Positions 9,492 through 61,885 of a stretch of DNA of 64,000 nt are shown in pieces (the stretch's first letter is position 1; every line of letters begins with the position of its first letter). A program made the translations under genes and the position numbers. The notes beneath the pieces are model-generated. The model did not search any database. It was not told where the DNA came from and saw nothing but the letters and a program-made list of their open reading frames with translations. The stretch comes from Macrostomum lignano (lineage: Eukaryota): assembly GCA_002269645.1 (NCBI GenBank), contig NIVC01001805.1, positions 124,001-188,000 on the forward strand, written 5' to 3'.

Positions 9492-9563
9492 TTTGCACTT
9501 CTAGCTCGTACAATCTACCAATCCGTGTGTATATACAGCGCCCATGATTGGATATTGTACCGC

Positions 9564-14400: not shown

Positions 14401-17400
14401 TTTCATAACCAGCAGCCTAGAAGAATCGCCCCCAATGAGCTTTCATAACCAGCAGCCTAGAAGAATCGCCCCCCCCCAATGAGCTTTCATAACCAGCAGC
14501 CTAGAAGAATCGCCCCCCCCCAATGAGCTTTCATAACCAGCAGCCTAGAAGAATCGCCCCCCCCCCCCAATGAGCTTTCATAACCAGCAGCCTAGAAGAA
14601 TCGCCCCAATAAACTTTCATAACCAGCAGCCTAGAAGAATCGCCCCCCCCCCCCAATGAGCTTTCATAACCAGCAGCCTAGAAGAATCGCCCCCCCCCAA
14701 TGAGCTTTCATAACCAGCAGCCTAGAAGAATCGCCCCCCCCCCAATGAGCTTTCATAACCAGCAGCCTAGAAGAATCGCCCCCCCCCAATGAGCTTTCAT
14801 AACCAGCAGCCTAGAAGAATCGCCCCCCCAATGAGATTTCATAACCAGCAGCCTAGAAGAATCGCCCCAATAAACTTTCATAACCAGCAGCCTAGAAGAA
14901 TCGCCCCAATAAACTTTCATAACCAGCAGCCTAGAAGAATCGCCCCCCCCCAATGAGCTTTCATAACCAGCAGCCTAGAAGAATCGCCCCCCCAATGAGC
15001 TTTCATAACCAGCAGCCTAGAAGAATCGCCCCCCCCAATGAGCTTTCATAACCAGCAGCCTAGAAGAATCGCCCCCCCCCAATGAGCTTTCATAACCAGC
15101 AGCCTAGAAGAATCGCCCCCCCCAATGAGCTTTCATAACCAGCAGCCTAGAAGAATCTTCCCCCCCCAATGAGCTTTCATAACCAGCAGCCTAGAAGAAT
15201 CGCCCCCCAATGAGCTTTCATAACCAGCAGCCTAGAAGAATCGCCCCCAATGAACTCCCATAACCAGCAGCCTAGAAGAATCGCCCCCCCCCCAATGAGC
15301 TTTCATAACCAGCAGCCTAGAAGAATCGCCCCCCCAATGAGCTTTCATAACCAGCAGCCTAGAAGAATCGCCCCCCCCCCAATGAGCTTTCATAACCAGC
15401 AGCCTAGAAGAATCGCCCCCCAATGAGCTTTCATAACCAGCAGCCTAGAAGAATCGCCCCCAATGAGCTTTCATAACCAGCAGCCTAGAAGAATCGCCCC
15501 CCCCCAATGAGCTTTCATAACCAGCAGCCTAGAAGAATCGCCCCCCCCCCAATGAGCTTTCATAACCAGCAGCCTAGAAGAATCGCCCCCCCCAATGAGC
15601 TTTCATAACCAGCAGCCTAGAAGAATCGCCCCAATAAACTTTCATAACCAGCAGCCTAGAAGAATCGCCCCCCCCAATGAGCTTTCATAACCAGCAGCCT
15701 AGAAGAATCGCCCCCCCCCCCAATGAGCTTTCATAACCAGCAGCCTAGAAGAATCGCCCCCCCAATGAGCTTTCATAACCAGCAGCCTAGAAGAATCGCC
15801 CCCCCCCCAATGAGCTTTCATAACCAGCAGCCTAGAAGAATCGCCCCCCCAATGAGATTTCATAACCAGCAGCCTAGAAGAATCGCCCCAATAAACTTTC
15901 ATAACCAGCAGCCTAGAAGAATCGCCCCAATAAACTTTCATAACCAGCAGCCTAGAAGAATCGCCCCCCCCAATGAGCTTTCATAACCAGCAGCCTAGAA
16001 GAATCGCCCCCCCCCAATGAGCTTTCATAACCAGCAGCCTAGAAGAATCGCCCCCCCCCCCAATGAGCTTTCATAACCAGCAGCCTAGAAGAATCGCCCC
16101 AATAAACTTTCATAACCAGCAGCCTAGAAGAATCGCCACCCCCCCCCCAATGAGCTTTCATAACCAGCAGCCTAGAAGAATCGCCCCCCCCCAATGAGCT
16201 TTCATAACCAGCAGCCTAGAAGAATCGCCCCCCCCCCAATGAGCTTTCATAACCAGCAGCCTAGAAGAATCGCCCCCCCCCCAATGAGCTTTCATAACCA
16301 GCAGCCTAGAAGAATCGCCCCCCCCCCAATGAGCTTTCATAACCAGCAGCCTAGAAGAATCGCCCCCCCCCAATGAGCTTTCATAACCAGCAGCCTAGAA
16401 GAATCGCCCCCCCCAATGAGCTTTCATAACCAGCAGCCTAGAAGAATCGCCCCCCCCCAATGAGCTTTCATAACCAGCAGCCTAGAAGAATCGCCCCCCC
16501 CCAATGAGCTTTCATAACCAGCAGCCTAGAAGAATCGCCCCCCCCCAATGAGCTTTCATAACCAGCAGCCTAGAAGAATCGCCCCCCCCAATGAGCTTTC
16601 ATAACCAGCAGCCTAGAAGAATCGCCCCCCCAATGAGCTTTCATAACCAGCAGCCTAGAAGAATCGCCCCCAATGAGCTTTCATAACCAGCAGCCTAGAA
16701 GAATCGCCCCCCCCCAATGAGCTTTCATAACCAGCAGCCTAGAAGAATCGCCCCCCCCCAATGAGCTTTCATAACCAGCAGCCTAGAAGAATCGCCCCCC
16801 CCCAATGAGCTTTCATAACCAGCAGCCTAGAAGAATCGCCCCCCCAATGAGCTTTCATAACCAGCAGCCTAGAAGAATCGCCCCCAATGAGCTTTCATAA
16901 CCAGCAGCCTAGAAGAATCGCCCCCCCCAATGAGCTTTCATAACCAGCAGCCTAGAAGAATCGCCCCCCCCAATGAGCTTTCATAACCAGCAGCCTAGAA
17001 GAATCGCCCCCCCCCAATGAGCTTTCATAACCAGCAGCCTAGAAGAATCGCCCCAATAAACTTTCATAACCAGCAGCCTAGAAGAATCGCCCCCCCCCAA
17101 TGAGCTTTCATAACCAGCAGCCTAGAAGAATCGCCCCCCCCAATGAGCTTTCATAACCAGCAGCCTAGAAGAATCGCCCCCCCCCCAATGAGCTTTCATA
17201 ACCAGCAGCCTAGAAGAATCGCCCCCCCCAATGAGCTTTCATAACCAGCAGCCTAGAAGAATCGCCCCCCCAATGAGATTTCATAACCAGCAGCCTAGAA
17301 GAATCGCCCCAATAAACTTTCATAACCAGCAGCCTAGAAGAATCGCCCCAATAAACTTTCATAACCAGCAGCCTAGAAGAATCGCCCCCCCCAATGAGCT

Positions 17401-20330
17401 TTCATAACCAGCAGCCTAGAAGAATCGCCCCCCCCAATGAGCTTTCATAACCAGCAGCCTAGAAGAATCGCCCCCCCCAATGAGCTTTCATAACCAGCAG
17501 CCTAGAAGAATCGCCCCAATAAACTTTCATAACCAGCAGCCTAGAAGAATCGCCCCCCCCCCCCAATGAGCTTTCATAACCAGCAGCCTAGAAGAATCGC
17601 CCCCCCCAATGAGCTTTCATAACCAGCAGCCTAGAAGAATCGCCCCCCCCCCAATGAGCTTTCATAACCAGCAGCCTAGAAGAATCGCCCCCCCCAATGA
17701 GCTTTCATAACCAGCAGCCTAGAAGAATCGCCCCCCCCCAATGAGCTTTCATAACCAGCAGCCTAGAAGAATCGCCCCCCCCCAATGAGCTTTCATAACC
17801 AGCAGCCTAGAAGAATCGCCCCCCCCCAATGAGCTTTCATAACCAGCAGCCTAGAAGAATCGCCCCCCCCCAATGAGCTTTCATAACCAGCAGCCTAGAA
17901 GAATCGCCCCCCCCCCAATGAGCTTTCATAACCAGCAGCCTAGAAGAATCGCCCCCCCCCCAATGAGCTTTCATAACCAGCAGCCTAGAAGAATCGCCCC
18001 CCCCAATGAGCTTTCATAACCAGCAGCCTAGAAGAATCGCCCCCCCAATGAGCTTTCATAACCAGCAGCCTAGAAGAATCGCCCCCAATGAACTCATAAC
18101 CAGCAGCCTAGAAGAATCGCCCCCCCCCAATGAGCTTTCATAACCAGCAGCCTAGAAGAATCGCCCCCCCCCAATGAGCTTTCATAACCAGCAGCCTAGA
18201 AGAATCGCCCCCCCCCAATGAGCTTTCATAACCAGCAGCCTAGAAGAATCGCCCCCCCAATGAGCTTTCATAACCAGCAGCCTAGAAGAATCGCCCCCAA
18301 TGAGCTTTCATAACCAGCAGCCTAGAAGAATCGCCCCCCCCCCAATGAGCTTTCATAACCAGCAGCCTAGAAGAATCGCCCCCCCCAATGAGCTTTCATA
18401 ACCAGCAGCCTAGAAGAATCGCCCCCCCCCAATGAGCTTTCATAACCAGCAGCCTAGAAGAATCGCCCCAATAGCTTTCATAACCAGCAGCCTAGAAGAA
18501 TCGCCCCCCCCAATGAGCTTTCATAACCAGCAGCCTAGAAGAATCGCCCCCCCCAATGAGCTTTCATAACCAGCAGCCTAGAAGAATCGCCCCCCCCCAA
18601 TGAGCTTTCATAACCAGCAGCCTAGAAGAATCGCCCCCCCCAATGAGCTTTCATAACCAGCAGCCTAGAAGAATCGCCCCCCCAATGAGATTTCATAACC
18701 AGCAGCCTAGAAGAATCGCCCCAATAGCTTTCATAACCAGCAGCCTAGAAGAATCGCCCCAATAAACTTTCATAACCAGCAGCCTAGAAGAATCGCCCCC
18801 CCCCAATGAGCTTTCATAACCAGCAGCCTAGAAGAATCGCCCCCCCCCCCAATGAGCTTTCATAACCAGCAGCCTAGAAGAATCGCCCCCCCCAATGAGC
18901 TTTCATAACCAGCAGCCTAGAAGAATCGCCCCAATAGCTTTCATAACCAGCAGCCTAGAAGAATCGCCCCCCCCCCAATGAGCTTTCATAACCAGCAGCC
19001 TAGAAGAATCGCCCCCCCCAATGAGCTTTCATAACCAGCAGCCTAGAAGAATCGCCCCCCCCCAATGAGCTTTCATAACCAGCAGCCTAGAAGAATCGCC
19101 CCCCCCCAATGAGCTTTCATAACCAGCAGCCTAGAAGAATCGCCCCCCCCCAATGAGCTTTCATAACCAGCAGCCTAGAAGAATCGCCCCCCCCCAATGA
19201 GCTTTCATAACCAGCAGCCTAGAAGAATCGCCCCAATGAGCTTTCATAACCAGCAGCCTAGAAGAATCGCCCCCCCCCAATGAGCTTTCATAACCAGCAG
19301 CCTAGAAGAATCGCCCCCCCCAATGAGCTTTCATAACCAGCAGCCTAGAAGAATCGCCCCCCCCCCCAATGAGCTTTCATAACCAGCAGCCTAGAAGAAT
19401 CGCCCCCCCCCAATGAGCTTTCATAACCAGCAGCCTAGAAGAATCGCCCCCCCCCAATGAGCTTTCATAACCAGCAGCCTAGAAGAATCGCCCCCCCCCC
19501 AATGAGCTTTCATAACCAGCAGCCTAGAAGAATCGCCCCCCCCCAATGAGCTTTCATAACCAGCAGCCTAGAAGAATCGCCCCCCCAATGAGCTTTCATA
19601 ACCAGCAGCCTAGAAGAATCGCCCCCCCCAATGAGCTTTCATAACCAGCAGCCTAGAAGAATCGCCCCCCCCAATGAGCTTTCATAACCAGCAGCCTAGA
19701 AGAATCGCCCCCCCCAATGAGCTTTCATAACCAGCAGCCTAGAAGAATCGCCCCCCCCCCAATGAGCTTTCATAACCAGCAGCCTAGAAGAATCGCCCCC
19801 AATGAACTCCCATAACCTTCCAGGTGAACGTGACCATGCTGGGCTCCGCAGTGGACGGGCACCCCAACCTCATGCAGATCATGTTCCCCCAGGGCAGCAG
19901 GACCCGCAGTCTCTATGTGTACACGACGAGGACCAGGAGATCATCAACTGGTACAACGCGGTCCGCGGCTGCAAGTACTATCGCTATCAGATGTCGCTGC
20001 TGTCAGCTGACGAGCTGCGCCAGCTGACTCCTCACCTACGACTTCATCATCTGCGACTGGCTGTGCAAGACCGGGCCGAACCAGACGGAGGCCTGGAAAC
20101 GGCGCTGGTGCTTCTGCTGCGCCGGTCGATCTTCTACTTCACCAACTTTATGGAGCCGCTGGCTAAAGGCGAAATCTGGCTGGGCGAGCGCCCGGATTCT
20201 CCGTGGAGTCCGGGGCGCCGGCCAACTTCAAGAAGAAGCCGGTTGGCCACATCTTCACGCTTCCCTAGCAACCGAGTCTTTGGCGAAAAAAAATTGACAC
20301 CCCGACAGCGAACTCGACGCCCCAAATAGT
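11411..20330 (+). CDS. ADAP1: ArfGAP with dual PH domains (ADAP/centaurin-alpha-like); last exon carries several frameshifts
   Basis: Exons 11411-11632, 12447-12593, 13205-13384 and 19824-~20330, joined by phase-0 GT-AG introns. ArfGAP zinc finger CAEC...CNAC..AYR, then AFYRRP...AKYKRKEF, PH1 (EGALMKR...YLPRHFEL...IINWYNAVR) and PH2 (WLCKTGPNQTEAWKRRW...AKGEIWLG). PH2 is readable only by switching frame about 5 times. ADAP1 and ADAP2 cannot be distinguished. Confidence 0.85.
11773..12335. repeat. 22-bp minisatellite (GAATCGCCCCTCATCACCTCCA) in ADAP intron 1
   Basis: About 25 units. Confidence 0.95.
12626..13110. repeat. 22-bp minisatellite (GATTCCCGATAGGGATTTTCAT) in ADAP intron 2
   Basis: About 22 units. 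Confidence 0.95.
13472..19817. repeat. 6.3-kb minisatellite, unit AATGAGCTTTCATAACCAGCAGCCTAGAAGAATCG(C)4-12, in ADAP intron 3
   Basis: Roughly 150 units of about 38-46 bp with a variable C-tract; ends a few bp before the acceptor AG (19822-19823). Confidence 0.97.
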
Positions 20331-22254
20331 CCCTGGCAGTTTAGCCGCCTACCGTATAAAATTCCCCTGTGTTGGCCGCAGGCCGTATGGAAAATAGCTT
20401 ATTAATTAATAATTAGTAATCATGCTTCACTTTGCTATTTGATAAGTCTTCGCACTACTAATTTGACTCGATTATTAAATTTTAAGCAAAGCAACTGGTT
20501 TTTATATGTTGAATAGCTAATTAATTAGTTTCCTCATTAACTGCAGCGCTATAATCAGCAGGTTAGATCTAAGTGCTTCCACACCGCAGGCTTCTGTCTA
20601 TACATTTCCTCTCTTTTTAGATGCCTGGACCTACGGGAGGTTTGAAGGAATGATGCCAAAATTTCTATAATTCCTTTTTAACGTTCCCTTTTTCTACAAA
20701 ACAGTAACTGTGTTACTAATTCTTGTGTTTACATATATTGTTTTCATATGTGTATTTAAAATACAGTAATTGCTCCCAGAGTTTCACTAAATTCTCCCCA
20801 GCTAAGAGTACATTTCTTATTGGCTGATTTTGTACATTTCTTTAATTTCTGGCCAAAACCAAATCTGCCGTTACTTTGCGGTTCAGTACTGACAGTAGTA
20901 TAGAAAGACTATGCGTAGGTTATGCAAGCTAGCTGTGTTTTTTGCATTGTATAAATATGCTTTGACAATTAAATGTTTTATTGCTGACAAACAATATCGG
21001 CTAACGTACATATTTATTCACAAACGAAGTATGATTTGCTATTCGGCATCCAATCCTAAGAACTGATCTTTTGTCATTTTTATACACTGTTTATTGCGGC
21101 TGCCTTAAAATCGAAATTCTAATTTATTTATAACTTTTATTGCTGACATTACATTTGCCGTGTTGCTTATAGTGCGTGACATTTTTCATATGTAGTTGTG
21201 TCTGCACCGCTCACTGTTTTTAATTTAAATCAAAAATAAAATCTGCGACTGGTGTGAATTTTCTCTCACTCCGCATTAAACTGGATAAAATATTGCGACT
21301 TATGCGCCGAATCCTTTTTGGTCTTTGCCACCTTGAAATGTATTTTATGAGCATACTTACAAATATTTGTGCATTTTGTTACCATTCCTGTGAGCTACAT
21401 GCTGCACTTAGCTGCTAGCTACCTGTTGCTCGGTATTGACAGTCGTGAACTGAGCTCCAATTTTAAAGTAAATCAACTGTTATTTGACCTGTTAGCCTTC
21501 AAAAATTAAAATGCCCCTACCTAACCTCATTCTCTCGTATGAGTGCGTATAAGCCAAGGGTATCCGTATACTGTAGTAGTAACCTTCGTCTAAAATTCAT
21601 TTGCAAGCTGCATCTAGTCAAGCTAGTCGCATAAGCAATGTTCAATTTTTTAAAAGGATGCATAATCAGCACTATAATTTAAATTTGTTCCACACTTGTC
21701 GATAAGTAGGGATTCTTCGCATTCACACAGGGGCGTAGTAAAGGCATACAGTTGTTCTTAAGTAAACGACAAGTCATGAAACCTCTGGCCAACAGAAATT
21801 CAGAAATGACTGCACACTCGCTTTGTGACTTTACTAACTTCATTCCCTGGCACTAATGATTATGATCATTTCTCTATGCCATTGAATTCAATTCTCGCGG
21901 CCGCGGCTGACTCGTGATTAAAAATACATGAAGACAATGTTCGGTTTACACTAATTACCGCGCGAATAATATAAATAAAAAATTGATAGGGATTTACAAC
22001 TTTGCTCGAAGTATTTTTTAGCTGTTGCTTCAATCTAGTTTAACTTTATTAAACTATTTGATAAGACTTTATTATCAGAGTTAATTACGTTAAAACTGTT
22101 GACTGTCACTAAATGACACTGAGGCACCGATTTAAATTGAAAGATAAGCTAATTTCCTAACTTAAAACGACATAGAGCTGAATTCGTGTTTCACTTTATA
22201 AATATTTTATTTAGATTGAACCTTAAATCCAATATCCAACTTTTAAGTACAGTT

Positions 22255-27480: not shown

Positions 27481-28007
27481 ATGAAGTTTCTGGTCGTGTC
27501 TGCCGCCCTAATTGCGGTTGTTTTCGCCGGAGGCTATGACAGCTACGATAGCTACGATAACTACGGCGCTGGCGGCTACGGTTCCGGCTACGGCTCTGAG
27601 GGTTACGGTGCTGGCGGCTACGGCGGCTACGAGCCTGGCTACGGTGCTGGTGGCTACGGTGGCTACGAGCCTGGCTACGGTGCTGGTGGCTACGGTGGCT
27701 ACGAGCCTGGCTACGGCGCTGGCGGCTACAGTGGCTACGAGCTGGCTACGGAGCTGGCGGCTACGGTGGCTACGAGCCTGGCTACGGAGCTGGCGGCTAC
27801 GGAGCTGGCGGCTACGGCGCTGGCGGCTACGGCGCTGCGGCTACGGAGCTGGCGGCTACGGAGCTGGCGGCTACGGTGCTGGCGGCTACGGCGCTGGCGG
27901 CTACGGCGCTGGCGGGCTACGGCAGCCAGCATGGCCGGGGCTATGGCAGCAGTGGCAAGGCCAGCAGCAGCAAGGCCAGCAAAGCCAAGAAGGCCGCCCG
28001 CCGTTAA
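27481..28007 (+). CDS. Secreted Gly/Tyr-rich repetitive structural protein 1 (about 175 aa; candidate eggshell/cement-type)
   Basis: Signal peptide MKFLVVSAALIAVVFA, then GYGAGGYGGYEP and GYGAG repeats and a basic tail ...SKASKAKKAARR*. Single exon with an upstream TATA box. Three 1-bp indels in the repeat (about 27740, 27836, 27914) must be corrected to keep the frame. Confidence 0.85.
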
Positions 28008-29765
28008 AGTACATGTTGTACTTGGTACAAATCGGCGTATTGCTACGCGTGAAGAACTGTTTTGTTGTAGGATCGTTTATTGCAGATTTATATGCTAGAT
28101 CCATTCGGACGCTAGTGATGGTTTGCTAAATATAAAGCAGTTTTTCATATAAACTTAAAAAGTATTCAGATCCATTTGACTCTGTCTGTTTATTTCCTAT
28201 TCATAAATAGTTTACGCCGTCTTCAAACTACAATAAGATTAAGGAAGTGAGAAGAGAAAAGAAAAGAGTGGAAAGGGAGAGGAGAGGGGAAAGGGAGAGG
28301 AGAGGAAAGGAGGAGGAGAGGGAAAGGGAGAGAGGGGAAAGGGAGAGGAGAGGGGAAAAGGGAGAGGAGAGGGGAAAAGGGAGAGGAGAGGGGAAAAGGG
28401 AGAGGAGAGGGGAAAAGGGAGAGGGAGGGGAAGGGAGAGGAGGGTCGGATTGCTATTTTGGAGTTTAAAAGACTAGTCCGAGGTTCGGATACTCGTAGAG
28501 CGGCTTGGCGGGCATGGGTTTTCCCAACCCTGCTAAAATTATGATCTCGTCAGTTTGATACTTATAGTTCGTACTATCAAAGCAATCGCAAAATTAGCAG
28601 GTCATGCGAGCGTATTTAAAACTTTCCAACGTTATAATAACTTGCTACTTGATTAGCTCTGCGTTCGATTCGGTACGGAAAGGGAGAGGAGAGGGGAAAG
28701 GGAGAGGAGAGGGGAAAAGGGAGAGGAGAGGGGAAAGGGAGAGGAGAGGGGAAAGGGAGAGGAGAGGGGAAAAGGGAGAGGAGAGGGGAAAAGGGAGAGG
28801 AGAGGGGAAAAGGGAGAGGAGAGGGGAAAAGGGAGAGGAGAGGGGAAAGGGAGAGGAGAGGGGAAAAGGGAGAGGAGAGGGTAAAAGGGAGAGGAGAGGG
28901 TAAAAGGGAGAGGAGAGGGGAAAAGGGTGAGGAGAGGGGAAAAGGGTGAGGAGAGGGGAAAAGGGAGAGGAGAGGGGAAAAGGGAGAGGAGAGGGGAAAA
29001 GGGAGAGGAGAGGGGAAGGGAGAGGAGGGTCGGATTGCTTTTTTGGAGTTTAAAAAGACTAGTCCGAGGTTCGGATACTCGTAGAGCGGCTTGGCGGGCA
29101 TGGGTTTTCCCAACCCCTGCTAAAATTATGATCTCGTCAGTTTGATACTTATAGTTCGTACTATCAAAGCAATCGCAAAATTAGCAAGGTCATGCGAGCG
29201 TATTTAAAACTTTCCAACGTAATAACTTGCTACTTGATTAGCTCTGCGTTCGATTCGGTACGCTAATCCACATCCCATGCAACCATCCGCGCAGATGTTA
29301 AAAATCTTATTTAAAATAAAAATGAATTTCTGCATATCTAGCTGTCTCACCAAAGCTCCTCGTGACATCACGTGACTGGCGCTTTCTCTCATTTTTCACT
29401 CAAGATTTTTTTGGATTTTTCCCAGTGTGACAATATTTTGACAGCAGTGACCTTTACCCTAAAAAGTATATTCGCTCTAAGCTTTAATCCCAATCCTTCT
29501 GGAAAATTATCCTATAATTTTACTCTCCTTTTCATACATTTTCGTTGTTGATTTTTTTGGACTTGAAACTGAAACTCATAAATCATTTTGCATCGAAATT
29601 CGATTATTTGTGGCTGCACCTGTCACTTTTTGACTGTGTCCCGGTCTTGTGGCTTTCCGGATCAAGGGTGGCAACGAGCTCAGCCAATCAGAATTAGTTT
29701 GGTGTGCGTTCTAGCAAACCGGCTCAGCCAATCAGAATCGACGTGTTTCACTAACAGGACCAGCT

Positions 29766-30130: not shown

Positions 30131-31197
30131 CAGGACCAGCTGGTCCCTGTAATTTTAACCACCTTTTTTTCCTGCTCGGGTTTAATCAACTTTCCGGTTC
30201 TGTATTCTGTTATTTCCTATTCTGTCTGTTTACGCCGTTCTTCAAACTACAATAAGATTAAGGAAGTGATTAAGAAGAAAAGAGTGGAAAGGGAAGGAGA
30301 GGGGAAAGGGAGAGGAGAGGGGAAAGGGAGAGGAGAGGGAAAGGGAGGAGAGGGGAAAGGGAGAGGAGAGGGGAAAAGGGAGAGGAGAGGGGAAAAGGGA
30401 GAGGAGAGGGGAAAGGGAGAGGAAGGGGAAAAGGAGAGGAGAGGGGAAGGGAGAGGAGGGTCGGATTGCTATTTTGGAGTTTAAAAAGACTAGTCCGAGG
30501 TTCGGATACTCGTAGAGCGGCTTGGCGGGCATGGGTTTTCCCCTGCCCTGCTAAATTATGATCTCGTCAGTTTGATACTTATAGTTCGTACTATCAAAGC
30601 AATCGCAAAATTAGCAAGGTCATGCGAGCGTATTTAAAACTTTCCAACGTTATAATAACTTGCTACTTGATTAGCTCTGCGTTCGATTCGGTACGCTAAT
30701 CCACATCCCATGCAACCATCCGCGCAGATGTTAAAAATCTTATTTAAAATAAAAATGAATTTCTGCATATCTAGCTGTCTCACCAAAGCTCCTCGTGACA
30801 TCACGTGACTGGCGCTTTCTCTCATTTTTCACTCAAGATTTTTTTGGATTTTTCCCAGTGTGACAATATTTTGACAGCAGTGACCTTTACCCTAAAAAGT
30901 ATATTCGCTCTAAGCTTTAATCCCAATCCTTCTGGAAAATTATCCTATAATTTTACTCTCCTTTTCATACATTTTTCGTGTTGATTTTTTTGGACTTGAA
31001 ACTGAAACTCATAAATCTTTTTGCTGCGAAATTCCTGATTTTTGACTGGTGCCCTGGTCACTTGTGACTGTGTCCCGGTCTTGTGGCTTTCCGGATTAGT
31101 GGCAACGGTGTGCTCTAGCCAATCAAATTAGTTTGGTGTGCGTTTCTAGCTAACCGGCTCAGCCAATCAGAATCGACGTGTACTAACAGGACCAGCT

Positions 31198-33181: not shown

Positions 33182-33674
33182 ATGAAGTGCCTGCTTGTCC
33201 TCGCCGCCCTGATTGCCGTGGCCTACGGTGACGGCTATGACAGAGTCGATATCTACGACACCTACTATGACGGCTACGGGGCCGGGCACTACGACGAACA
33301 AGACGGTTATGGCAGCTACGGATCGGGCCAAGGTTCAGGCTACGGGGCCGGGCACTACGACGAACAAGACGGTCATGGCAGCTACGGATCGGGCCAAGGT
33401 TCAGGCTACGGATCGGGCCAGGGTTCAGGCTACGGATCGGCCAAGGTTCAGGCTACGGATCGGGCCAAGGTTCAGGCTACGGATCGGGCCAAGGTTCAGG
33501 CTACGGATCGGGCCAGGTTCAGGCTACGGATCGGGCCAAGGTTCAGGCTACGGTTCCGGCTACGGATCGGGCCAAGGTTCAGGCTACGGATCAGGCTACG
33601 GTTCCGGCTACGGATCGCGCTATGGTTCAGGCTACGACTCTTACGGTCATGGCAAGGCCTACCGCCGCCGTTGA
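33182..33674 (+). CDS. Secreted Gly/Tyr/Ser-rich repetitive structural protein 2 (about 164 aa), paralog of protein 1
   Basis: Signal peptide MKCLLVLAALIAVAYG, then GYGAGHYDEQDG x2, (GSGQGSGY)n and tail YGHGKAYRRR*. Two 1-bp deletions (about 33440, 33515) must be corrected. TATA box upstream. Confidence 0.85.
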
Positions 33675-34627
33675 GCATTGCAGAAGCAACGAGACACTAA
33701 AAAAGCGCCCAAAACACTGTGTACGGTTGTAGCATTTCTCAATGCACTGTAGATTGCGTAATATGTACTCGTATTTGCGAATGATTCGAGCATAATTTAT
33801 TATTTAGTTCTGTTTTCGAAATAAAACGTTCTTCTAATTTTACTTCGCCAATCAAAGCTTCCATTGTTGTCGTTTTCCCATTTCCTTGTTCACCAATCGC
33901 GCAAGCAGCCCTGCGCTGCAGATCTGGCAAAAAACCGCGAAGTTTTCTTGAAAGCAACAACAGGTAAGCAACATTTTACATACGGAAATCTAAGAAATTT
34001 CAATCAAAAAACAGATTTATTTCCATGAGGAGGTGAAACTGAAGTCTGCAGTACTGGTGCTTCTCTTAAAAGGATAAATTTAATACGCAATTACATGCAC
34101 ACAAATAACGCTAAACACCCATGTACTATTCTTTAATTATTTATGCATTGTTTCAGTTAATCACAGGAAACTAAAAAAATCTGGAAATGTACCAATTGAT
34201 TAATTAAGGCATACAGAGTAAAACAATAACTGACTTGAATTTCAACTCGCTTGGGGAAAATAGAATAACAAAAATGAAAACAAAGATAGCAGCTAATTTG
34301 TAGCAGCAGAGGCCGTCTATGTTAGATACGATATTTCAATTTGATAGGCAAAACAAAAGACTGGAAAATCAATCTGGAACAGCCATTAGTAGGCCGGCAC
34401 AGAAACAGCCCCGCCCGGATAAGAATTCAGAGCGGGCACGCGCAACTTGCCGCTTCTGATTGGCAGTCTGATGCTGGCGGATCAACATGGCAAATTGAAA
34501 ACAGAAGGTGCGGCATCTGTGACTGGGAGAGATAGTACAAATCAAATCTCTGGTTAAACACGAGCAGTATTTTTATTATGGGACTCTCTGTTGTCACCAG
34601 ACACAGCACAACACCTGCATTGACCAG

Positions 34628-34669
34628 TTAGTTCCAGATGTCCGTTGGGAAGCCGCCGCCGCTTGACGA

Positions 34670-34709
<40 letters not shown>

Positions 34710-37657
34710 GGCTGCTGCTGCTTGCCAGCGATTCCCAGGCCCGCCATCTGGCTCTGAATCTGCGGGGGACAGCGGCTGGTTGCTCAGACATCTTTCATCA
34801 TTGGCATCGGCTTCTTCTGCCCCCCCTCTCATCTGCATCCATGGCCTCAGCTTCCCGCTGCTCCTTCATCCCTGGTCTCAGCTTCCCGCTGCTCCTTCAT
34901 CCCTGGTCTCAGCTTCCCGCTGCTCCTTTATCCCTGGTCTCAGCTTCCCACTGGTCCTTCATCCCTGGTCTCAGCTTCCCACTGGTCCTTCATCCCTGGT
35001 CTCAGCTTCCCACTGCTCCTTCATCCCTGGTCTCAGCTTCCCACTGCTCCTTCATCCATGGCCTCAGCTTCCCACTGCTCCTTCATCCCTGGCCTCAGTA
35101 TCCCGCTGCTCATTCATCCCTGGCCTCAGTATCCCCTGCTCCTTCATCCCTGGCCTCAGTATTCCGCTGCTCCTTCATCCCTGGCCTCAGTATCCCTGCT
35201 CCTTCATCCCTGGCCTCAGTATTCCGCTGCTCCTTCATCCCTGGCCTCAGTATCCCGCTGCTCCTTCATCCCTGGCCTTTATCACATGTACCTGCTGCAG
35301 ATAAGCGGCCTGACTTGTTGGGGTTGGCCCATAGAACAGCTGCTGCTGTTGCTGCTGGAACGGCTGCTGTTGCTGCTGGAACGGCTGCTGTTGCTGCTGG
35401 AATGGCTGCTGTTGCTGCTGGAACGGCTGCTGTTGCTGCTGGAATGGCTGCTGTTGCTGCTGGAACGGCTGCTGTTGCTGCTGGAATGGCTGCTGTTGCT
35501 GCTGGAACGGCTGCTGTTGCTGCTGGAATGGCTGCTGTTGCTGCTGGAACGGCTGCTGTTGCTGCGGCAGTTGAAAGTTGTCACTAGCCTGATTAAACTG
35601 AGGCTGCTGCTGCTGCTGCCCAGTGGAATACAGCAGGGTGCCAGCAGTTTGGCTGTACAAGCCAGTCTGCATCACCTGCTGCTGGTAGAACTGGTGCTGC
35701 TGTTGCTGTTGGTACATGTGCGCCTGCTGCCCGGTTGCCAGCATCGGGCTACTCGCCGAGTAGTGCATGCCGCTTGGTGCGAACACCTGCTGCATCCCCG
35801 GCGGCTGGGCAGCGTACAGGGCCATTATGGAGTCTTTGGCCGACATTTTTGGCGGTGCTGCGGCGGCAGCTGATGATGAAGCATCCGCCACTGACGAGGT
35901 TGGCCAGCTTCCGCCATCATCAAAGATCAAATCCGGATTGACTCGCGGCTGGGTGGCCGCCGCCTGCTGCTGCTGCAGTGCCCCGTTGCCCACGGCAGCG
36001 GTGAAGTTGCCGAACTCGGAGTCCGGCGAAGTAGCCAGTCCCGACCCGTTCCTTGACGCGGCCGTTGATGAGCCGCCGCCAAGCAGGTCATCGTCGCCAA
36101 TCAGCAGCAAGTCTTGCGCCGGCCGCGCTGCTGGCGGTGGCGTCGGCTGCGGAGCCGCTTCAGCTGCCTTGCTCGCAGCGGTTGCGGGCGCAGTCGCTGA
36201 GCTTGCCGGAGCCGAGGCCGAGGCAGCGGCAGGCGGTCGCGGAATCGCCCCGATGGAGGCAGCGGGCCGCTGCTGCTGCGCGACTGTGGCGGCGGATGAC
36301 TTGACGAGGCTGTACACCGAGGACGGGTCCGGCCGGGGCGGCTTAAAGTTGGCGATGAGGTAGCGCCGGTCCTCGTACTTGGCCCTGATGAACTGCTCCA
36401 TGCCTGGACGGGTCAGGGGTGGGGGAGGGGGAAATGACTTTTAAAATGAAAAATACTTCGATTTATTATGCCGGTCAACTTAATTTATTGTGCACAAATG
36501 TTAGGAGTTTTTGCACTTGCAACAATCGCCTCCGGCTTTCCGCAAGCAAAACCTTTAAACTGTATCTTCATCATGTTTGACCGACTCCAGACTCGAGATT
36601 ATTTAGAAAGAAATTCATTTCGGACTTAAAATTGCAATAAAACTTTTAAAACCCCAAATCCAGTGCGTCTGCATAGCGAGCAGGAGAAAAGGGGTGGCGT
36701 CTCAGCACCCCAACCAGGTCGATAAACTGGCAAGCTTGTGTCTGACTTTGACCTCTCCTTACTGCTCTCTCATTGGCTGAGCTAGATTGGACCTGTCTCC
36801 TAGGTTTCGTCTGTCTAATATTTACCTCTCTACTTACTGCGCTCTCATTGGCTGAGCTAGATTGGACTTGCCTCCTAGGTTTCGTCCGTCTAATTTTGAC
36901 CTCTCTCCTTACTGCTCTCTCATTGGCTGAGATAGATTGGGCCTGCCCCTAGGCTGAGTTTCGTCCGTCTTGCGTTCACTTGTGTACATCGAGTTAAATG
37001 CTTGGTGTTCATTCTTAACCCCCCCCCCACATGCTCCTCAGGCCGCAAACCCCGAGGAAGGAAAGAAAATTTTAGCTGCCACAATAAATTCAAATGACCA
37101 TGCGCAGACAAACTACTGAAAGATGAGTAGACGCTCTACTTTTTCACAGCTTTTTTTCGTGAGAGAGCAGTAAAGACAGATGCCTGATCTGGTATCTGCG
37201 GTTTGCGGCAGCGCCCAAAGCCCCGGTACGAATTATAGGTAAAGTAAATAGCCTCAAAGCCGCCAATAAAAACAAAAAACCCACCAGCGTCGCTGTTCGG
37301 CCTGCGAAAGCTGCTAGGCAGATTGGCCTCGTAGGCGGCCCTGGCCAGCGTGTTGCCCATAGCGGCCACCCCGGCCACCTGGTCCAGAGTCCACGAGTCC
37401 AAATTAACGGACTTCACCTTGGAGATGTGCACGCCCAACTTTCGGTGGATGCCGGCGCACCGGATGCAGATGAACACGCCGATGTTCCAGCTGGCCCAGC
37501 GCGGACTCTTGGCCTCGCAGTCGGCGCAGTACTTGTTGTCCTCCTCTTTGAGCAGCGAGGCTAAGGCCTCCTGCAGCAGCTCTCTATCCTTGTCCGCCTT
37601 GCCGCCTGAGGCAGCCGACCTGCCGTTCCGCTTCTGCTGCTGGTGCAGGTAGCTCAT
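34628..37657 (-). CDS. SMAP1: Stromal membrane-associated protein (SMAP1/2-type ArfGAP), 538 aa
   Basis: Exons 37285-37657, 35292-36403 and 34628-34759 join in frame (phases 1 and 0). Canonical CADC-X16-CIRCAGIHR ArfGAP domain, [17 protein letters not shown] clathrin-box-like motifs, [11 protein letters not shown]-rich C-terminus ending PTDIWN*. SMAP1 and SMAP2 cannot be distinguished. Confidence 0.92.
34838..35278. repeat. About 30-bp minisatellite (CTTCCCGCTGCTCCTTCATCCCTGGTCTCAG) in SMAP intron 2
   Basis: About 15 units. Confidence 0.95.
35340..35565 (-). repeat. Coding 21-bp repeat (QQQQQPF)x10 in SMAP exon 2
   Basis: In frame in ORF 35247-36401. Confidence 0.95.
36750..36975. repeat. 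About 75-bp imperfect repeat x3 with CCAAT boxes in SMAP intron 1
   Basis: CTCTCTCATTGGCTGAG.TAGATTGG occurs three times. Confidence 0.8.
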
Positions 37658-39689
37658 GGCTGGCTGTGGGTACTGGGATGGGGGAGCAACAGTCAATAAT
37701 TATGATTGCACAATGTAGCTCATGGCTGGCTGTGGGTACTGGGATGGGGGAGCAACAGTCAATAATTATGATTGCACAATGTAGCTCATGGCTGGCTGTG
37801 GGTACTGGGATGGGGGAGCAACAGTCAATAATTATGATTGCACAATGTAGCTCATGGCTGGCTGTGGGTACTGGGATGGGGGAGCAACAGTCAATAATTA
37901 TGATTGCACAATGTAGCTCATGGCTGGCTGTGGGTACTGGGATGGGGGAGCAACAGTCAATAATTATGATTGCACAATGTAGCTCATGGCTGGCTGTGGG
38001 TACTGGGATGGGGGAGCAACAGTCAATAATTATGATTGCACAATGTAGCTCATGGCTGGCTGTGGGTACTGGGATGGGGGAGCAACAGTCAATAATTATG
38101 ATTGCACAATGTAGCTCATGGCTGGCTGTGGGTACTGGGATAGGGGAGCAACAGTCAATAATTATGATTGCACAATGTAGCTCATGGCTGGCTGTGGGTA
38201 CTGGGATGGGGGAGCAACAGTCAATAATTATGATTGCACAATGTAGCTCATGGCTGGCTGTGGGTACTGGGATAGGGGAGCAACAGTCAATAATTATGAT
38301 TGCACAATGTAGCTCATGGCTGGCTGTGGGTACTGGGATGGGGGAGCAACAGTCAATAATTATGATTGCACAATGTAGCTCATGGCTGGCTGTGGGTACT
38401 GGGATGGGGGAGCAACAGTCAATAATTATGATTGCACAATGTAGCTCATGGCTGGCTGTGGGTACTGGGATGGGGGAGCAACAGTCAATAATTATGATTG
38501 CACAATGTAGCTCATGGCTGGCTATGGGTACTGGGATGGGGAGCAACAGTCAATAATTATGATTGCACAATGTAGCTCATGGCTGGCTGTGGGTACTGGG
38601 ATAGGGGAGCAACAGTCAATAATTATGATTGCACAATGTAGCTCATGGCTGGCTGTGGGTACTGGGATGGGGGAGCAACAGTCAATAATTATGATTGCAC
38701 AATGTAGCTCATGGCTGGCTGTGGGTACTGGGATGGGGGAGCAACAGTCAATAATTATGATTGCACAATGTAGCTCATGGCTGGCTGTGGGTACTGGGAT
38801 GGGGGAGCAACAGTCAATAATTATGATTGCACAATGTAGCTCATGGCTGGCTATGGGTACTGGGATGGGGGAGCAACAGTCAATAATTATGATTGCACAA
38901 TGTAGCTCATGGCTGGCTGTGGGTACTGGGATGGGGGAGCAACAGTCAATAATTATGATTGCACAATGTAGCTCATAGCTGGCTGTGGGTACTGGGATGG
39001 GGGAGCAACAGTCAATAATTATGATTGCACAATGTAGCTCATGGCTGGCTGTGGGTACTGGGATGGGGGAGCAACAGTCAATAATTATGATTGCACAATG
39101 TAGCTCATGGCTGGCTGTGGGTACTGGGATGGGGGAGCAACAGTCAATAATTATGATTGCACAATGTAGCTCATGGCTGGCTGTGGGTACTGGGATGGGG
39201 GAGCAACAGTCAATAATTATGATTGCACAATGTAGCTCATGGCTGGCTGTGGGTACTGGGATGGGGGAGCAACAGTCAATAATTATGATTGCACAATGTA
39301 GCTCATGGCTGGCTATGGGTACTGGGATGGGGGAGCAACAGTCAATAATTATGATTGCACAATGTAGCTCATGGCTGGCTGTGGGTACTGGGATGGGGGA
39401 GCAACAGTCAATAATTATGATTGCACAATGTAGCTCATGGCTGGCTGTGGGTACTGGGATAGGGGAGCAACAGTCAATAATTATGATTGCACAATGTAGC
39501 TCATGGCTGGCTGTGGGTACTGGGATGGGGGAGCAACAGTCAATAATTATGATTGCACAATGTAGCTCATGGCTGGCTGTGGGTACTGGGATGGGGAGCA
39601 ACAGTCAATAATTATGATTGCACAATGTAGCTCATGGCTGGCTGGGTGGGTAATGGGGGAGCAACAGTCAATAATTATGATTGCACAAT
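37649..39689 (-). repeat. 66-bp tandem array (about 31 units) containing the SMAP acceptor-like site and ATG
   Basis: Sense unit TACATTGTGCAATCATAATTATTGACTGTTGCTCCCCCATCCCAGTACCCACAGCCAGCCATGAGC; the last unit runs into the SMAP CDS. Confidence 0.97.
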
Positions 39690-40388
39690 GAAAAAGCAAA
39701 TGTGCATTTTGCAATTTCCAATTTTTACTTTTCATTTCAAGTTATTAATTTAAGGCAGAGATTGGCTGCACATAAGATACTTGAGCATATGAATGACGGT
39801 CACACTTCAAGTGGAAAATGTTACTTGGATTGAAGCTTTTGACTAAAAAAAGCTTAACTGCTCCTATCTGCAATAGAAATTCTACCAGTCTTACATGCAT
39901 ACACTTGCAAGAAAAGCTGTGAATTTTAAAAAAAAACACTTTAATTTCTTTTAGCATGAATGAACTATTCTCAGATTTTATTCAAATAAACACTTATTAA
40001 ATATAGTTTTGTAAATTTCATGCAAAAAAATATTGCATTTTTTGGACACAATCGCCCAGTAACAAAAAAACTGCCATCACAGAAGTTAGCAAACCCTTAT
40101 GTTTGTAGCAAACACATGCTGATTGCAATCATTTAAAACAATGCATGATGCAGTCACAAATATTGTAGATATGAGTTGCTTGCAAGAAGCCTTTTCTATC
40201 CAATAAGCGTCACCAAGCTCATCAAAAATTTGCTCTACAGCAGCCAGACAGCTATTAGCAAAATGTCTTGTGGACAGATGAGACAAACATTGAGTTGTTT
40301 TAGGCACATTTTGCAGCTCAATATGTTTGATGCAAGCCAAATGAGGCATTTAAGCAAAATAATATAATATTAACTATAAAGCATAGTA

Positions 40389-44639: not shown

Positions 44640-47405
44640 ATGGAAGTCGAAGAAGACGTCTGTCCAGCGTGTGTCAGAGCAGTAACTGACGAGGAGCCTG
44701 CATTAAATTGTGACAAGTGCAAACATTGGTTCCATCGACTGTGTTTGACTGGTAAGTTTATGCCCTATATTCTGCATTCCATCAACTTAGTGTGCATTCA
44801 CTCTTAAAATGGAAGAGGAGAAAGAGGGTAGGGGAGAGAAGGTGGGGAGAGAGGGTAGAGGGGAAGAAGGTAGTGGAGAGAGTGAAGAGGAAAAGAGAGT
44901 AGGGGAGAGAAGGTGGGGAGAGGAGGTAGAGAGGAGAGAGGGTATGTGGAGAGATGATAAATGGCTGAAATTGTTTTTGCTTTTTATTTTAGGAGCATCG
45001 TTCATTTCTGCTGCACATTATAAGAAGTTGATGAAGAAGAGTTCTTTTTCTTGGTGCTGCATGATCTGCACTACTCAGGAGGTACATGTAGAGAGCGATG
45101 CTGAGGTTGAAGTTGCTGCTGCCGGTGGTGATGAGGTAGAGAGCGATGCCGAAATCGATGTTGCTGCTGCCGGTGGTGATGAGGTAGAGAGCGATGCCGA
45201 AATCGATGTTGCTGCTGCCGGTGGTGATGAGGTAGAGAGCGATGCCGAAATCGATGTTGCTGCTGCCGGTGGTGATGAGGTAGAGAGCGATGCCGAAATC
45301 GATGTTGCTGCTGCCGGTGGTGATGAGGTAGAGAGCGATGCCGAAATCGATGTTGCTGCTGCCGGTGGTGATGAGGTAGAGAGCGATGCCGAAATCGATG
45401 TTGCTGCTGCCGGTGGTGATGAGGTAGAGAGCGATGCCGAAATCGATGTTGCTGCTGCCGGTGGTGATGAGGTAGAGAGCGATGCCGAAATCGATGTTGC
45501 TGCTGCCGGTGGTGATGAGGTAGAGAGCGATGCCGAAATCGATGTTGCTGCTGCCGGTGGTGATGAGGTAGAGAGCGATGCCGAAATCGATGTTGCTGCT
45601 GCCGGTGGTGATGAGGTAGAGAGCGATGCCGAAATCGAAGTTGCTGCTGCCGGTGGTGATGAGGTAGAGAGCGATGCCGAAATCGAAGTTGCTGCTGCCG
45701 GTGGTAGCGAAAGTGATGAGGTAGAGAGCGATGTTGAGATCCAAGTTGCTGCTACTGCTGATTCATCGATTGAAGACCCAGACCCTCAACCAGTCGCTGA
45801 TCACAATCGTCCAGAGACATTTGAGGTACTTCAAAACGGAAGCAATAGAGGTTCAGTCCTTGTTGTTTCCTCAAAAGGATACAGCTATGGTTTTCACCGT
45901 AGGCGTGGTGATCACGAATACTACAGATGCACTCAGCGCAATCGACATACGCCATGCTGTGCGACCCTAAATCGCAGAGCCGGTGAAGACTTCCGACCAG
46001 GAAAAAGGAACCACTGCCATGCACCAACAGCTGATGCTTGTGCAGTACGAAAAATTATTCGAGACGTGAAGACATCAGCAGCTGCGGATGTCTTCAAATC
46101 TGCTGCGGCTCTATCTGAGAAGCGACTTCTACACAGTTATCGTTCGTCAGAGGCTAAAAACTTGCCAAATCCAGCGAATCTTGCTAGAACAGCTAATCGT
46201 TTTCGAGAAAGGCAACGGCCAGAGGAGCCAAAGACATTAAACTTTGAGCTGCAGCACGAAGCGATTCCCGATGGCTTTTGCAGAAGCGATGTTCGAGTTG
46301 GGGACCGTCGTCACCTTGTCTTTGCGACTGAGCAACAGATTGCTTTGTTGAAAAAAACTTCCGACATCTACATGGACGGAACCTTCTCAATCGTAAGAAG
46401 GCCTTTTGTGCAGCTCTATTCACTTCACGGTTTTCTGAGGGCGGAAGGACAAATAAAACAGGTAATAATTAAGTTCCTACTGAAACGCTTATAAAGCATA
46501 AAGCATAAAGTATAAAGCCCACCAAGTATAAAGCATGGAGGCATAGCAAAGAAACTCTAAATCAAATGGTGTTACTCTTAGTAGCGGAATACGCAAATCA
46601 TAGTTTATGCATCCTATATATTTAATTTTTTTTCTAAAAGCCGTTTTATTTAAACCAAAAACAGGTACCATTGGCCTTCATTATCATGTCTGGGAGACGA
46701 ACCCGGGACTACAAAGCCATTTTAAGGGAAGTTCGAAGATTCGCTCCCGATTTCTCACCCGCGAGATTCGTTCTCGACTATGAGCAGCCAGCCTGGAAGG
46801 CGGTTCGACGCATCTTTCCGCAGGCTGAAGTGCAGGGCTGCAATTTCCACTGGACACAGGCAGTCTGGCGAAAAGTTCAGAACCTGGGTCTGCAGCAGTC
46901 CTATCGTGATGATGATGGCACAGAACGGTTCGTCCAGAAGTTGATGGCACTGCCGTACCTGCCACGTGACGAGATTAACGAGGTGTTTGAAAGCCTCCGA
47001 GCTTCGCAAGCTGCTCAGGCAGACGAAAGACTGCAGGAACTATGCGAGTACATTGGCAGTACATGGTTGGGCGAAGGCAGCAACTGGAAAGCGGATGACA
47101 TTTGCGTGTTTGGTCAGCCCATCAGGACCAACAACGACCTGGAGGGCTGGCACTATCGCCTAAACCGTAAAGCTGGGAGTCGCAACCTCCAGTTCTATCT
47201 GTTGCTGCAACTGCTCCACGAGGAAGCTATCCTGGTGCCACTCCAGGCTCACCTGCTGTCCAGAGGGGTACTGCGTCGAGAGCAGCGGCAAGGCTACCGC
47301 ACAGTTCAGTCTCGTTTGTTTCGCTACTGGGCGGAACATGAACAAGGTACTCGAAGCACTCGGCGGCTGCTTAAATCCTGTGGTCGTCTCTTTAATCCGA
47401 AGTGA
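44640..47405 (+). CDS. PHD finger-acidic repeat-FLYWCH-MULE DDE transposase, 3 exons, 773 aa
   Basis: Exons 44640-44751, 44993-46461 and 46665-47405 join in frame. C4HC3 PHD (CPAC..CDKCKHWFHRLC|..WCCMIC), FLYWCH (GYSY...YYRC...C...NHCH), MULE catalytic motifs YMDGTF, FVLDYE, GCNFHW, RTNNDLEGWH; no stop codons. Confidence 0.92.
45082..45750 (+). repeat. Coding 48-bp minisatellite (DEVESDAEIDVAAAGG), 12 near-perfect plus 2 degenerate copies
   Basis: Units start at 45130, 45178 ... 45658, in frame within transposase exon 2. Confidence 0.95.

Positions 47406-50315: not shown

Positions 50316-61885
<11,570 letters not shown>

Follow-up and report, generated by a model that had tools for sequence, protein, structure and literature searches.

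Minisatellites, or variable number tandem repeats (VNTRs), at the 5' ends of genes are represented by the human INS VNTR, the MAOA-uVNTR, and the CSTB dodecamer repeat. Regulatory upstream open reading frames (uORFs) of the GCN4/ATF4 type are conserved and lie in the mature leader; outrons of trans-spliced genes in M. lignano and nematodes are treated in PMC8629364, which cites Conrad et al. (1993). In flatworms, the AUG at the 3' terminus of the spliced leader (SL) is used as an initiator (Cheng et al. 2006, cited in PMC12582326). Here we compare these systems with an array of 66-bp units at the 5' boundary of a SMAP gene in Macrostomum lignano, located in a 64,000-nucleotide stretch of contig NIVC01001805.1 (positions 124,001 to 188,000, forward strand; hereafter the window). 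The best explanation, which we hold to be probable, is that the array is a young, copy-number-variable minisatellite that grew in place from the SMAP 5' boundary and that lies, near-neutral, in the outron of the gene. Searches of open-access text for tandemly repeated trans-splice acceptors with start codons, or for the locus tags, found nothing relevant.

Structure and origin of the array

Tandem Repeats Finder reported the array at 37649..39690, with a period of 66, 31.0 copies, 98% matches, and a score of 3965. When the minus strand was split at each ATTGTGCAATCATAA, the resulting unit table contained 31 head-to-tail units, 21 of them identical; 28 units were 66 nt long, two were 65 nt, and one was 63 nt. 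A 30-nt unit probe gave 31 perfect matches, compared to 0 expected in shuffles, and no match elsewhere in the window. On the minus strand the unit reads ATTGTGCAATCATAATTATTGAC TGTTGCTCCCCCATCCCAG TACCCACAGCCAGCC ATGAGCTAC, and the consensus unit is ATTGTGCAATCATAATTATTGACTGTTGCTCCCCCATCCCAG followed by TACCCACAGCCAGCC and ATGAGCTAC. The array and its parts are as follows:

37649..39689, minus strand: tandem array of 31 copies of a 66-bp unit, comprising a branch-point-like TTGAC, a pyrimidine tract, CAG, a 15-nt leader, and ATG AGC TAC
37649..37714, minus strand: gene-proximal unit (unit 31), the sole unit leading into the real coding sequence (CDS) and identical to the single copy at the related locus L002
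39627..39689, minus strand: distal-most unit (unit 1), 63 nt, diverged (CCCCCATTACCCACCCAGCC) and without the CCCAG/TAC arrangement
37700..37723, minus strand: potential 7-codon uORF ATG AGC TAC ATT GTG CAA TCA TAA (MSYIVQS-stop), shown for units 30/31 and recurring in each distal unit

These results bear out the initial annotation, made from the DNA letters alone, which had described about 31 tandem 66-bp units at 37649-39689, each a copy of the SMAP 5' boundary. TTGAC followed by TGTTGCTCCCCCATCCCAG, i.e., an acceptor-like AG with a pyrimidine tract and a branch-point-like site, occurs in 30 of the 31 units, and all 31 retain an ATG whose context is favourable, with G at -3 and A at +4. The gene-proximal unit reads on as CTG CAC CAG, giving the MSYLHQQQ of the real coding sequence; the distal units read on as ATT GTG CAA TCA TAA and cross into the next unit, yielding the MSYIVQS-stop peptide that the same annotation had named. 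It had also noted that the unit contains no strong donor, and all three GT dinucleotides per unit (GTGCAA, GTTGCT, and GTACCC) indeed misfit the M. lignano donor motif GT[G/A]AG.

Variation among the units is sparse. CCCCT replaces CCCCC in the pyrimidine tract of four units, CATAG replaces CACAG in three (a stop in frame with an SL-donated AUG), GCT replaces GCC ahead of the ATG in one, and two units carry a 1-nt deletion in the C5 run. All variants are confined to the 3' half of the unit and the first 30 nt are invariant. The initial annotation had cast the array as decoy acceptors and uORFs whose number could tune SMAP output, or else as ~31 near-identical acceptors of which exon definition must select the last. 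Under such a rheostat, SL addition would be spread over ~31 equal acceptors to give a ladder of mRNAs with 0–30 uORFs, and array length would serve as a heritable, fast-mutating dial on SMAP protein. The intact branch point, pyrimidine tract, and CAG in all units but one speak for this model, as do the universally retained ATG and the lack of any donor in the unit able to remove downstream units. However, this intactness is explained by youth: at a variant density of ~0.5% per site, calculated from the unit table, the 150 AG/ATG positions in the distal units should have received ~0.8 hits, and one lost CCCAG (unit 1) was seen. The variation of the array is therefore in line with neutrality, and we observed no sign of selection or constraint on it. 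As a separate observation, the invariant 5' half of the unit (positions 1-20) holds ATTGTGCAAT, a bZIP/C-EBP-like palindrome, together with TAATTA; both are short and putative motif matches, and ATTGTGCAAT reads ATTGCGCAAT in one L003 unit.

A cluster look-up led to two NCBI gene models, at two related loci, both in the same assembly as the window (GCA_002269645.1). The first, L003 (NIVC01001806.1), carries an array at the same position with 25.0 units; its 601 nt ahead of the array match the window at 100% and its intron 1 at 99.1%, so that the two loci, otherwise ~99% identical, differ by six units and several variants. The variant units of L003 (one CATAG, two C deletions, and one ATTGCGCAAT) are unlike those of the window, which points to rapid turnover. 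The second, L002 (NIVC01000022.1), has no array and contains exactly one consensus unit, reading ...GCTTTTTG ATTGTGCAATCATAATTATTGACTGTTGCTCCCCCATCCCAG TACCCACAGCCAGCC ATG AGC TAC CTG CAC... Its non-coding flanks are 88–94% identical to the window and colinear around the single unit, identifying it as an older homeolog. Unit copy number is thus 1, 25, and 31 at L002, L003, and the window, respectively. Judged from this comparison, the single unit is the ancestral state, and the array was born in place by tandem duplication of the SMAP 5' boundary after the homeologs split. Microhomology at the duplication junction amounts to one base (C). The first duplication would have been followed by array growth through slippage or unequal exchange. 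For the rheostat model, the difference in length between near-identical loci supplies variation on which a dial could act, yet the homeolog L002 has one unit only. A paralog locus, L001, has no similar 5' structure.

Within the fetched loci and the window, the array has the properties of a minisatellite, namely a unit of 66 bp (the class spans ~10–100 bp), head-to-tail order, copy-number variation, and an origin in place. Exon 1 and the proximal unit (439 nt) are 100% identical at all three loci, and the adjoining intron and upstream DNA is 6–12% different from L002; this perfect identity suggests gene conversion between the homeologs or very strong constraint. Since exon 1 is 100% identical at all three loci, the array-bearing copies show no decay. 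We had considered the identity of the unit between homeologs as a mark of constraint on the acceptor, but dropped this argument given that exon 1 is wholly identical too, which makes gene conversion and coding constraint inseparable.

The initial annotation had allowed that the array might be an assembly artefact. We regard it as very improbable that the long-read assembler created the array or its length. Two units per array carry a 1-nt deletion in the C5 run, which is typical of residual long-read error, and a single assembly stands behind all of the evidence. However, the array occurs on two separate contigs, in the same place but with lengths and variant units that differ; at 2 kb it is easily spanned by long reads; and the assembly was evaluated with paired-end and mate-pair libraries (PMC5730564).

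Tandem arrays are also abundant around the locus. They make up 30.9% of the window, with units of 16–75 bp, the largest having 148 copies of a 44-bp unit (6.3 kb; e.g., 13472-19800), and the paralog locus is likewise rich in them. Simple and tandem repeats account for 15% of the M. lignano genome (PMC5730564), and repeats commonly inflate the distances between its trans-spliced genes (PMC8629364). With tandem arrays this abundant in the genome, it is unsurprising that one of them coincides with a gene boundary.

The gene-proximal acceptor and the spliced leader

Three features mark the junction between the array and the gene:

37673..37695, minus strand: probable 3' splice (SL trans-splice) acceptor of the proximal unit, TTGAC..TGTTGCTCCCCCATCCCAG, with the AG at 37674-37673; gene models start at 37672
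37658..37672, minus strand: 15-nt leader TACCCACAGCCAGCC, open and in frame with both the terminal AUG of the SL and the SMAP AUG
37640..37641, minus strand: AG of CACCAG/CAGCAG, 18 nt inside the CDS (33 nt past the CAG boundary); the NCBI model of L002 starts after the equivalent AG (L002 10001 / window 37639)

We compared this junction with the 5' ends of five gene models. In UniProt, three models derived from ML2, an older assembly (P0121, P0122, and P0241), start with YPQPAMSY, i.e., at the first base past the CAG; P0121 carries L002-type polymorphisms, which indicates that the single-copy locus shares the CAG boundary. Proximal-specific sequence (...MSYLHQQQ or downstream) is present in all five models, and array sequence in none. 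When the open sense frame of the array was used as a protein query, no database protein was found; with the antisense open frame, the only hits were unrelated repetitive proteins of low identity (e.g., P0243), and we treated these as repeat-against-repeat noise. In the NCBI annotation, peaks of SL-trimmed reads defined the 5' ends of genes (PMC5730564), and two other partial CDSs in the fetched loci begin directly after an AG. Given that three UniProt models start at the base next to the CAG and one NCBI model 3 nt later, the CAG is probably a real acceptor. We dropped a reading of the locus-tag suffix 'g2' as 'second gene of transcription unit', the naming rule being unstated in the portion of the text available.

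The gene models also bear on the alternative that the units are cis-spliced micro-exons, each consisting of a 27-nt exon (TAC...ATT) and a 39-nt intron (GTGCAA...CCCAG), which would add in-frame YPQPAMSYI repeats to the protein. Both lengths are multiples of three and the frame stays open. However, the donor GTGCAA misfits the donor motif, the average M. lignano intron is 1.1–1.4 kb long (PMC5730564), and YPQPAMSYI repeats occur in no gene model or database protein; this alternative is extremely improbable. As for the rheostat, a distal SL junction is expected to read SL/TACCCACAGCCAGCCATGAGCTAC and then ATTGTG; a unit-unit precursor without an SL would read ATGAGCTACATTGTGCAATC. No transcript from a distal unit is known and no annotated protein contains array sequence; minisatellites, moreover, are ubiquitous in the genome. 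With five proximal-specific models, a single unit in L002, near-identical loci that are six units apart, and arrays covering 31% of the window, the proposal that array length tunes SMAP output is unsupported and, in our judgement, improbable.

The use of SL trans-splicing in Macrostomum, which the initial annotation had given as established, is borne out by PMC8629364, in which the M. lignano SL is given as CGGTCTCTTACTGCGAAGACTCAATTTATTGCATG, ending in ATG, and 30% of genes are trans-spliced. If joined at CAG/TAC, the AUG of the SL is in frame with SMAP and adds an N-terminal extension ahead of MSY. If joined at a distal unit, it turns the first uORF into a 13-residue reading instead of MSYIVQS, a consequence that the initial annotation missed. 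From the boundaries of the gene models, SL addition at the proximal CAG appears to be the most likely reading, and one in which we have good confidence. A neighbouring gene in L002 provides a side observation: a cyclophilin CDS (20023-20562, minus strand) has no ATG of its own and begins GTG TAC TTT GAC after ctctcccacag, and the AUG that ends the SL seems to serve as its start codon. Within the window, no SL RNA gene or SL-like sequence was found, and no Rfam family matched in its 36-44 kb region.

The following model would account for these observations. The duplicated 66-bp segment would comprise a 3' splice acceptor, most likely for the SL, the 15-nt leader, and the first three SMAP codons. 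Lying upstream of the acceptor in use, the array would belong to the outron and be discarded, and the mature mRNA would carry the SL joined at the gene-proximal CAG/TAC, with an expected junction of ...TTATTGCATG/TACCCACAGCCAGCCATGAGCTAC followed by CTGCAC. An RNA spliced at a distal unit would keep unpaired downstream acceptors and could be trans-spliced again, such that the last acceptor would be the only stable end point; it alone precedes a real 373-nt exon with a donor, which may be the reason for its choice. RNAs spliced at distal units, with up to 30 uORFs, would probably be poorly translated and unstable. The array-free homeolog may relax selection, allowing the array to be tolerated. 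RNA structure does not account for the choice of site, as the predicted fold of three units and the exon start was less stable than shuffles (z = +1.5). It is unlikely that distal acceptors are really used, whether by recursive SL trans-splicing, in which RNAs would end up at the last acceptor, or by a length-dependent ladder of uORF-loaded mRNAs.

Several points weigh against placing the SL at the proximal CAG and the array in a near-neutral outron. The NCBI model of L003 (P0242) starts PQPAMSY, 3 nt past the AG, and the NCBI model of L002 starts QQKRNG after CACCAG, 18 nt inside the CDS; both are flagged partial and both depart from the CAG boundary. This internal AG may be a second SL site, with an expected junction of ...TTATTGCATG/CAGCAGAAGCGG and the SL AUG in frame there too (MQQKRNG...), or an annotation quirk. 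At five of six positions, TCCCAG agrees with the motif published for SL acceptors, [T/C]TNCAG; the motif is present at 9551 of the 21754 M. lignano SL sites and is not obligatory (PMC8629364). Furthermore, the joining of the SL at the CAG is deduced from model boundaries and not from reads, all three loci come from a single assembly of one inbred line, and some splicing to distal units, with an effect on SMAP expression, is possible.

The boundary could, lastly, be a sharp transcription start, in which case the array would consist of 31 stacked promoters or enhancer modules. This reading is unlikely but the most serious of the alternatives. Its motif spacing can be read straight from the unit: ATAATTAT lies ~29 nt upstream of an Inr-like CCAGTA, with possible sites at ATTGTGCAAT and TAATTA. 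The YPQPA models would likewise result from a transcript that begins at either A or G in CAGTAC, and regulatory elements sit near the start in the M. lignano genes tested (PMC5730564). However, the 17 nt ahead of the CAG form a typical C/T-rich acceptor tract and the branch-point-like TTGAC lies 20 nt upstream. Unspliced 5' ends are seldom resolved with single-base precision in RNA-seq assemblies, yet three independent models from ML2 have their start immediately past the AG, and other partial CDSs of the same NCBI annotation begin right after acceptor AGs. The motif matches, in addition, are all short and putative. We continue to prefer trans-splicing to the gene-proximal CAG.

The SMAP gene and its neighbourhood

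The gene downstream of the array encodes a SMAP-type ArfGAP, and Pfam domain PF01412 was found on all homologs. Its closest database proteins are M. lignano UniProt entries with 97–98% identity; a full-length query was needed to reach them, as exon 1 alone retrieved only short distant homologs. The CDS in the window is intact, with three exons, 538 aa, and canonical GT..AG introns:

37285..37657, minus strand: coding part of SMAP exon 1, with the ATG at 37657-37655 and the ArfGAP zinc finger; 100% identical at all three loci
35292..36403, minus strand: SMAP exon 2, including a 21-bp coding minisatellite at 35342-35565
34628..34759, minus strand: SMAP exon 3 and stop codon, completing the intact 538-aa CDS

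The gene contains further repeats. The copy number of the 21-bp coding repeat of exon 2, (QQQQQPF)n, is 10.7 in the window (35342-35565), 12.7 in L002 (12010-12293), and 13.7 in L003 (12099-12382), which indicates that the length of the SMAP protein varies between gene copies. An array of 14 copies of a 31-bp unit, at 34836-35278 of the window, begins 14 nt past the exon-2 donor and is present also in L002 and L003, and intron 1 holds a 75-bp repeat.

On the upstream side, a beta-N-acetylglucosaminidase (NAGidase, PF07555) gene lies at ~50400-54000 on the same (minus) strand as SMAP, ~10.7 kb upstream of the array. This spacing is too far for a tight operon, unless the repeats and a transposon are discounted. 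Between the two genes, plus-strand open reading frames (ORFs) at 44809-47402 have weak Pfam hits to a FLYWCH zinc finger and a MULE transposase domain; this stretch does not align with L002 and is thus probably a transposon insertion. Elsewhere in the window, two signal-peptide-like Gly/Tyr-rich repeat ORFs (27481-28098 and 33182-33700, plus strand) have frames that drift within their own tandem repeats, and small genes homologous to them are annotated in L002 and L003. A local duplication (28200-29400 vs. 30200-30900) contains the same small ORFs and AG-rich 18–19-bp arrays. Exact look-ups of window ORFs, namely the SMAP read-through ORF and a neighbouring Gly/Tyr-rich ORF, found none on record.

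Implications and comparison with known systems

The locus illustrates how repeats can overrun the boundaries of genes in M. lignano and mislead both read mapping and the annotation of 5' ends. It also offers a natural experiment on how trans-splicing selects one of many identical acceptors. Loci with 1, 25, and 31 units in one animal act as controls, and transgenesis is feasible in this species. If the distal units are unused, the locus would reveal the strength with which downstream sequence governs acceptor choice. If they are used, minisatellite length would be linked to translation through uORFs; were a length dial to prove true, a fast-mutating minisatellite would be a heritable control on the dosage of one homeolog of a trafficking gene.

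In the context of SL-AUG initiation in flatworms, the likeness is that the M. lignano SL ends in an AUG that falls in frame with SMAP at CAG/TAC, and that the cyclophilin neighbour in L002 appears dependent on the SL AUG. In contrast, SMAP has its own AUG 15 nt downstream and does not need that of the SL, and the in-frame fit would occur ~1-in-4 by coincidence. Compared to uORF control of the GCN4/ATF4 type, the array has short ORFs with good start context ahead of the main AUG, provided that distal units reach the mature mRNA. Unlike those systems, its uORFs are probably removed with the outron and are not conserved among homologous genes: L002 lacks an upstream unit and hence the uORF, and the paralog L001 has no comparable structure.

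Further parallels exist with outrons and with 5' VNTRs. As in the outrons of SL trans-spliced genes of M. lignano and nematodes (PMC8629364), the acceptor is near the AUG, there is no upstream cis donor, the upstream RNA would be discarded, and repeats are common. An ordinary outron has one main acceptor, whereas that of SMAP would offer ~31 near-identical acceptors in a row. With the INS, MAOA, and CSTB repeats the array shares its position just ahead of a gene, head-to-tail units that measure tens of bp and are highly alike, variable copy number, and growth by slippage or unequal exchange. It differs in that its unit copies the gene's own acceptor, leader, AUG, and first three codons instead of anonymous promoter DNA, and in having no shown effect on expression. 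Set beside these systems, the array is real, ordinary in kind, and unusual in content.

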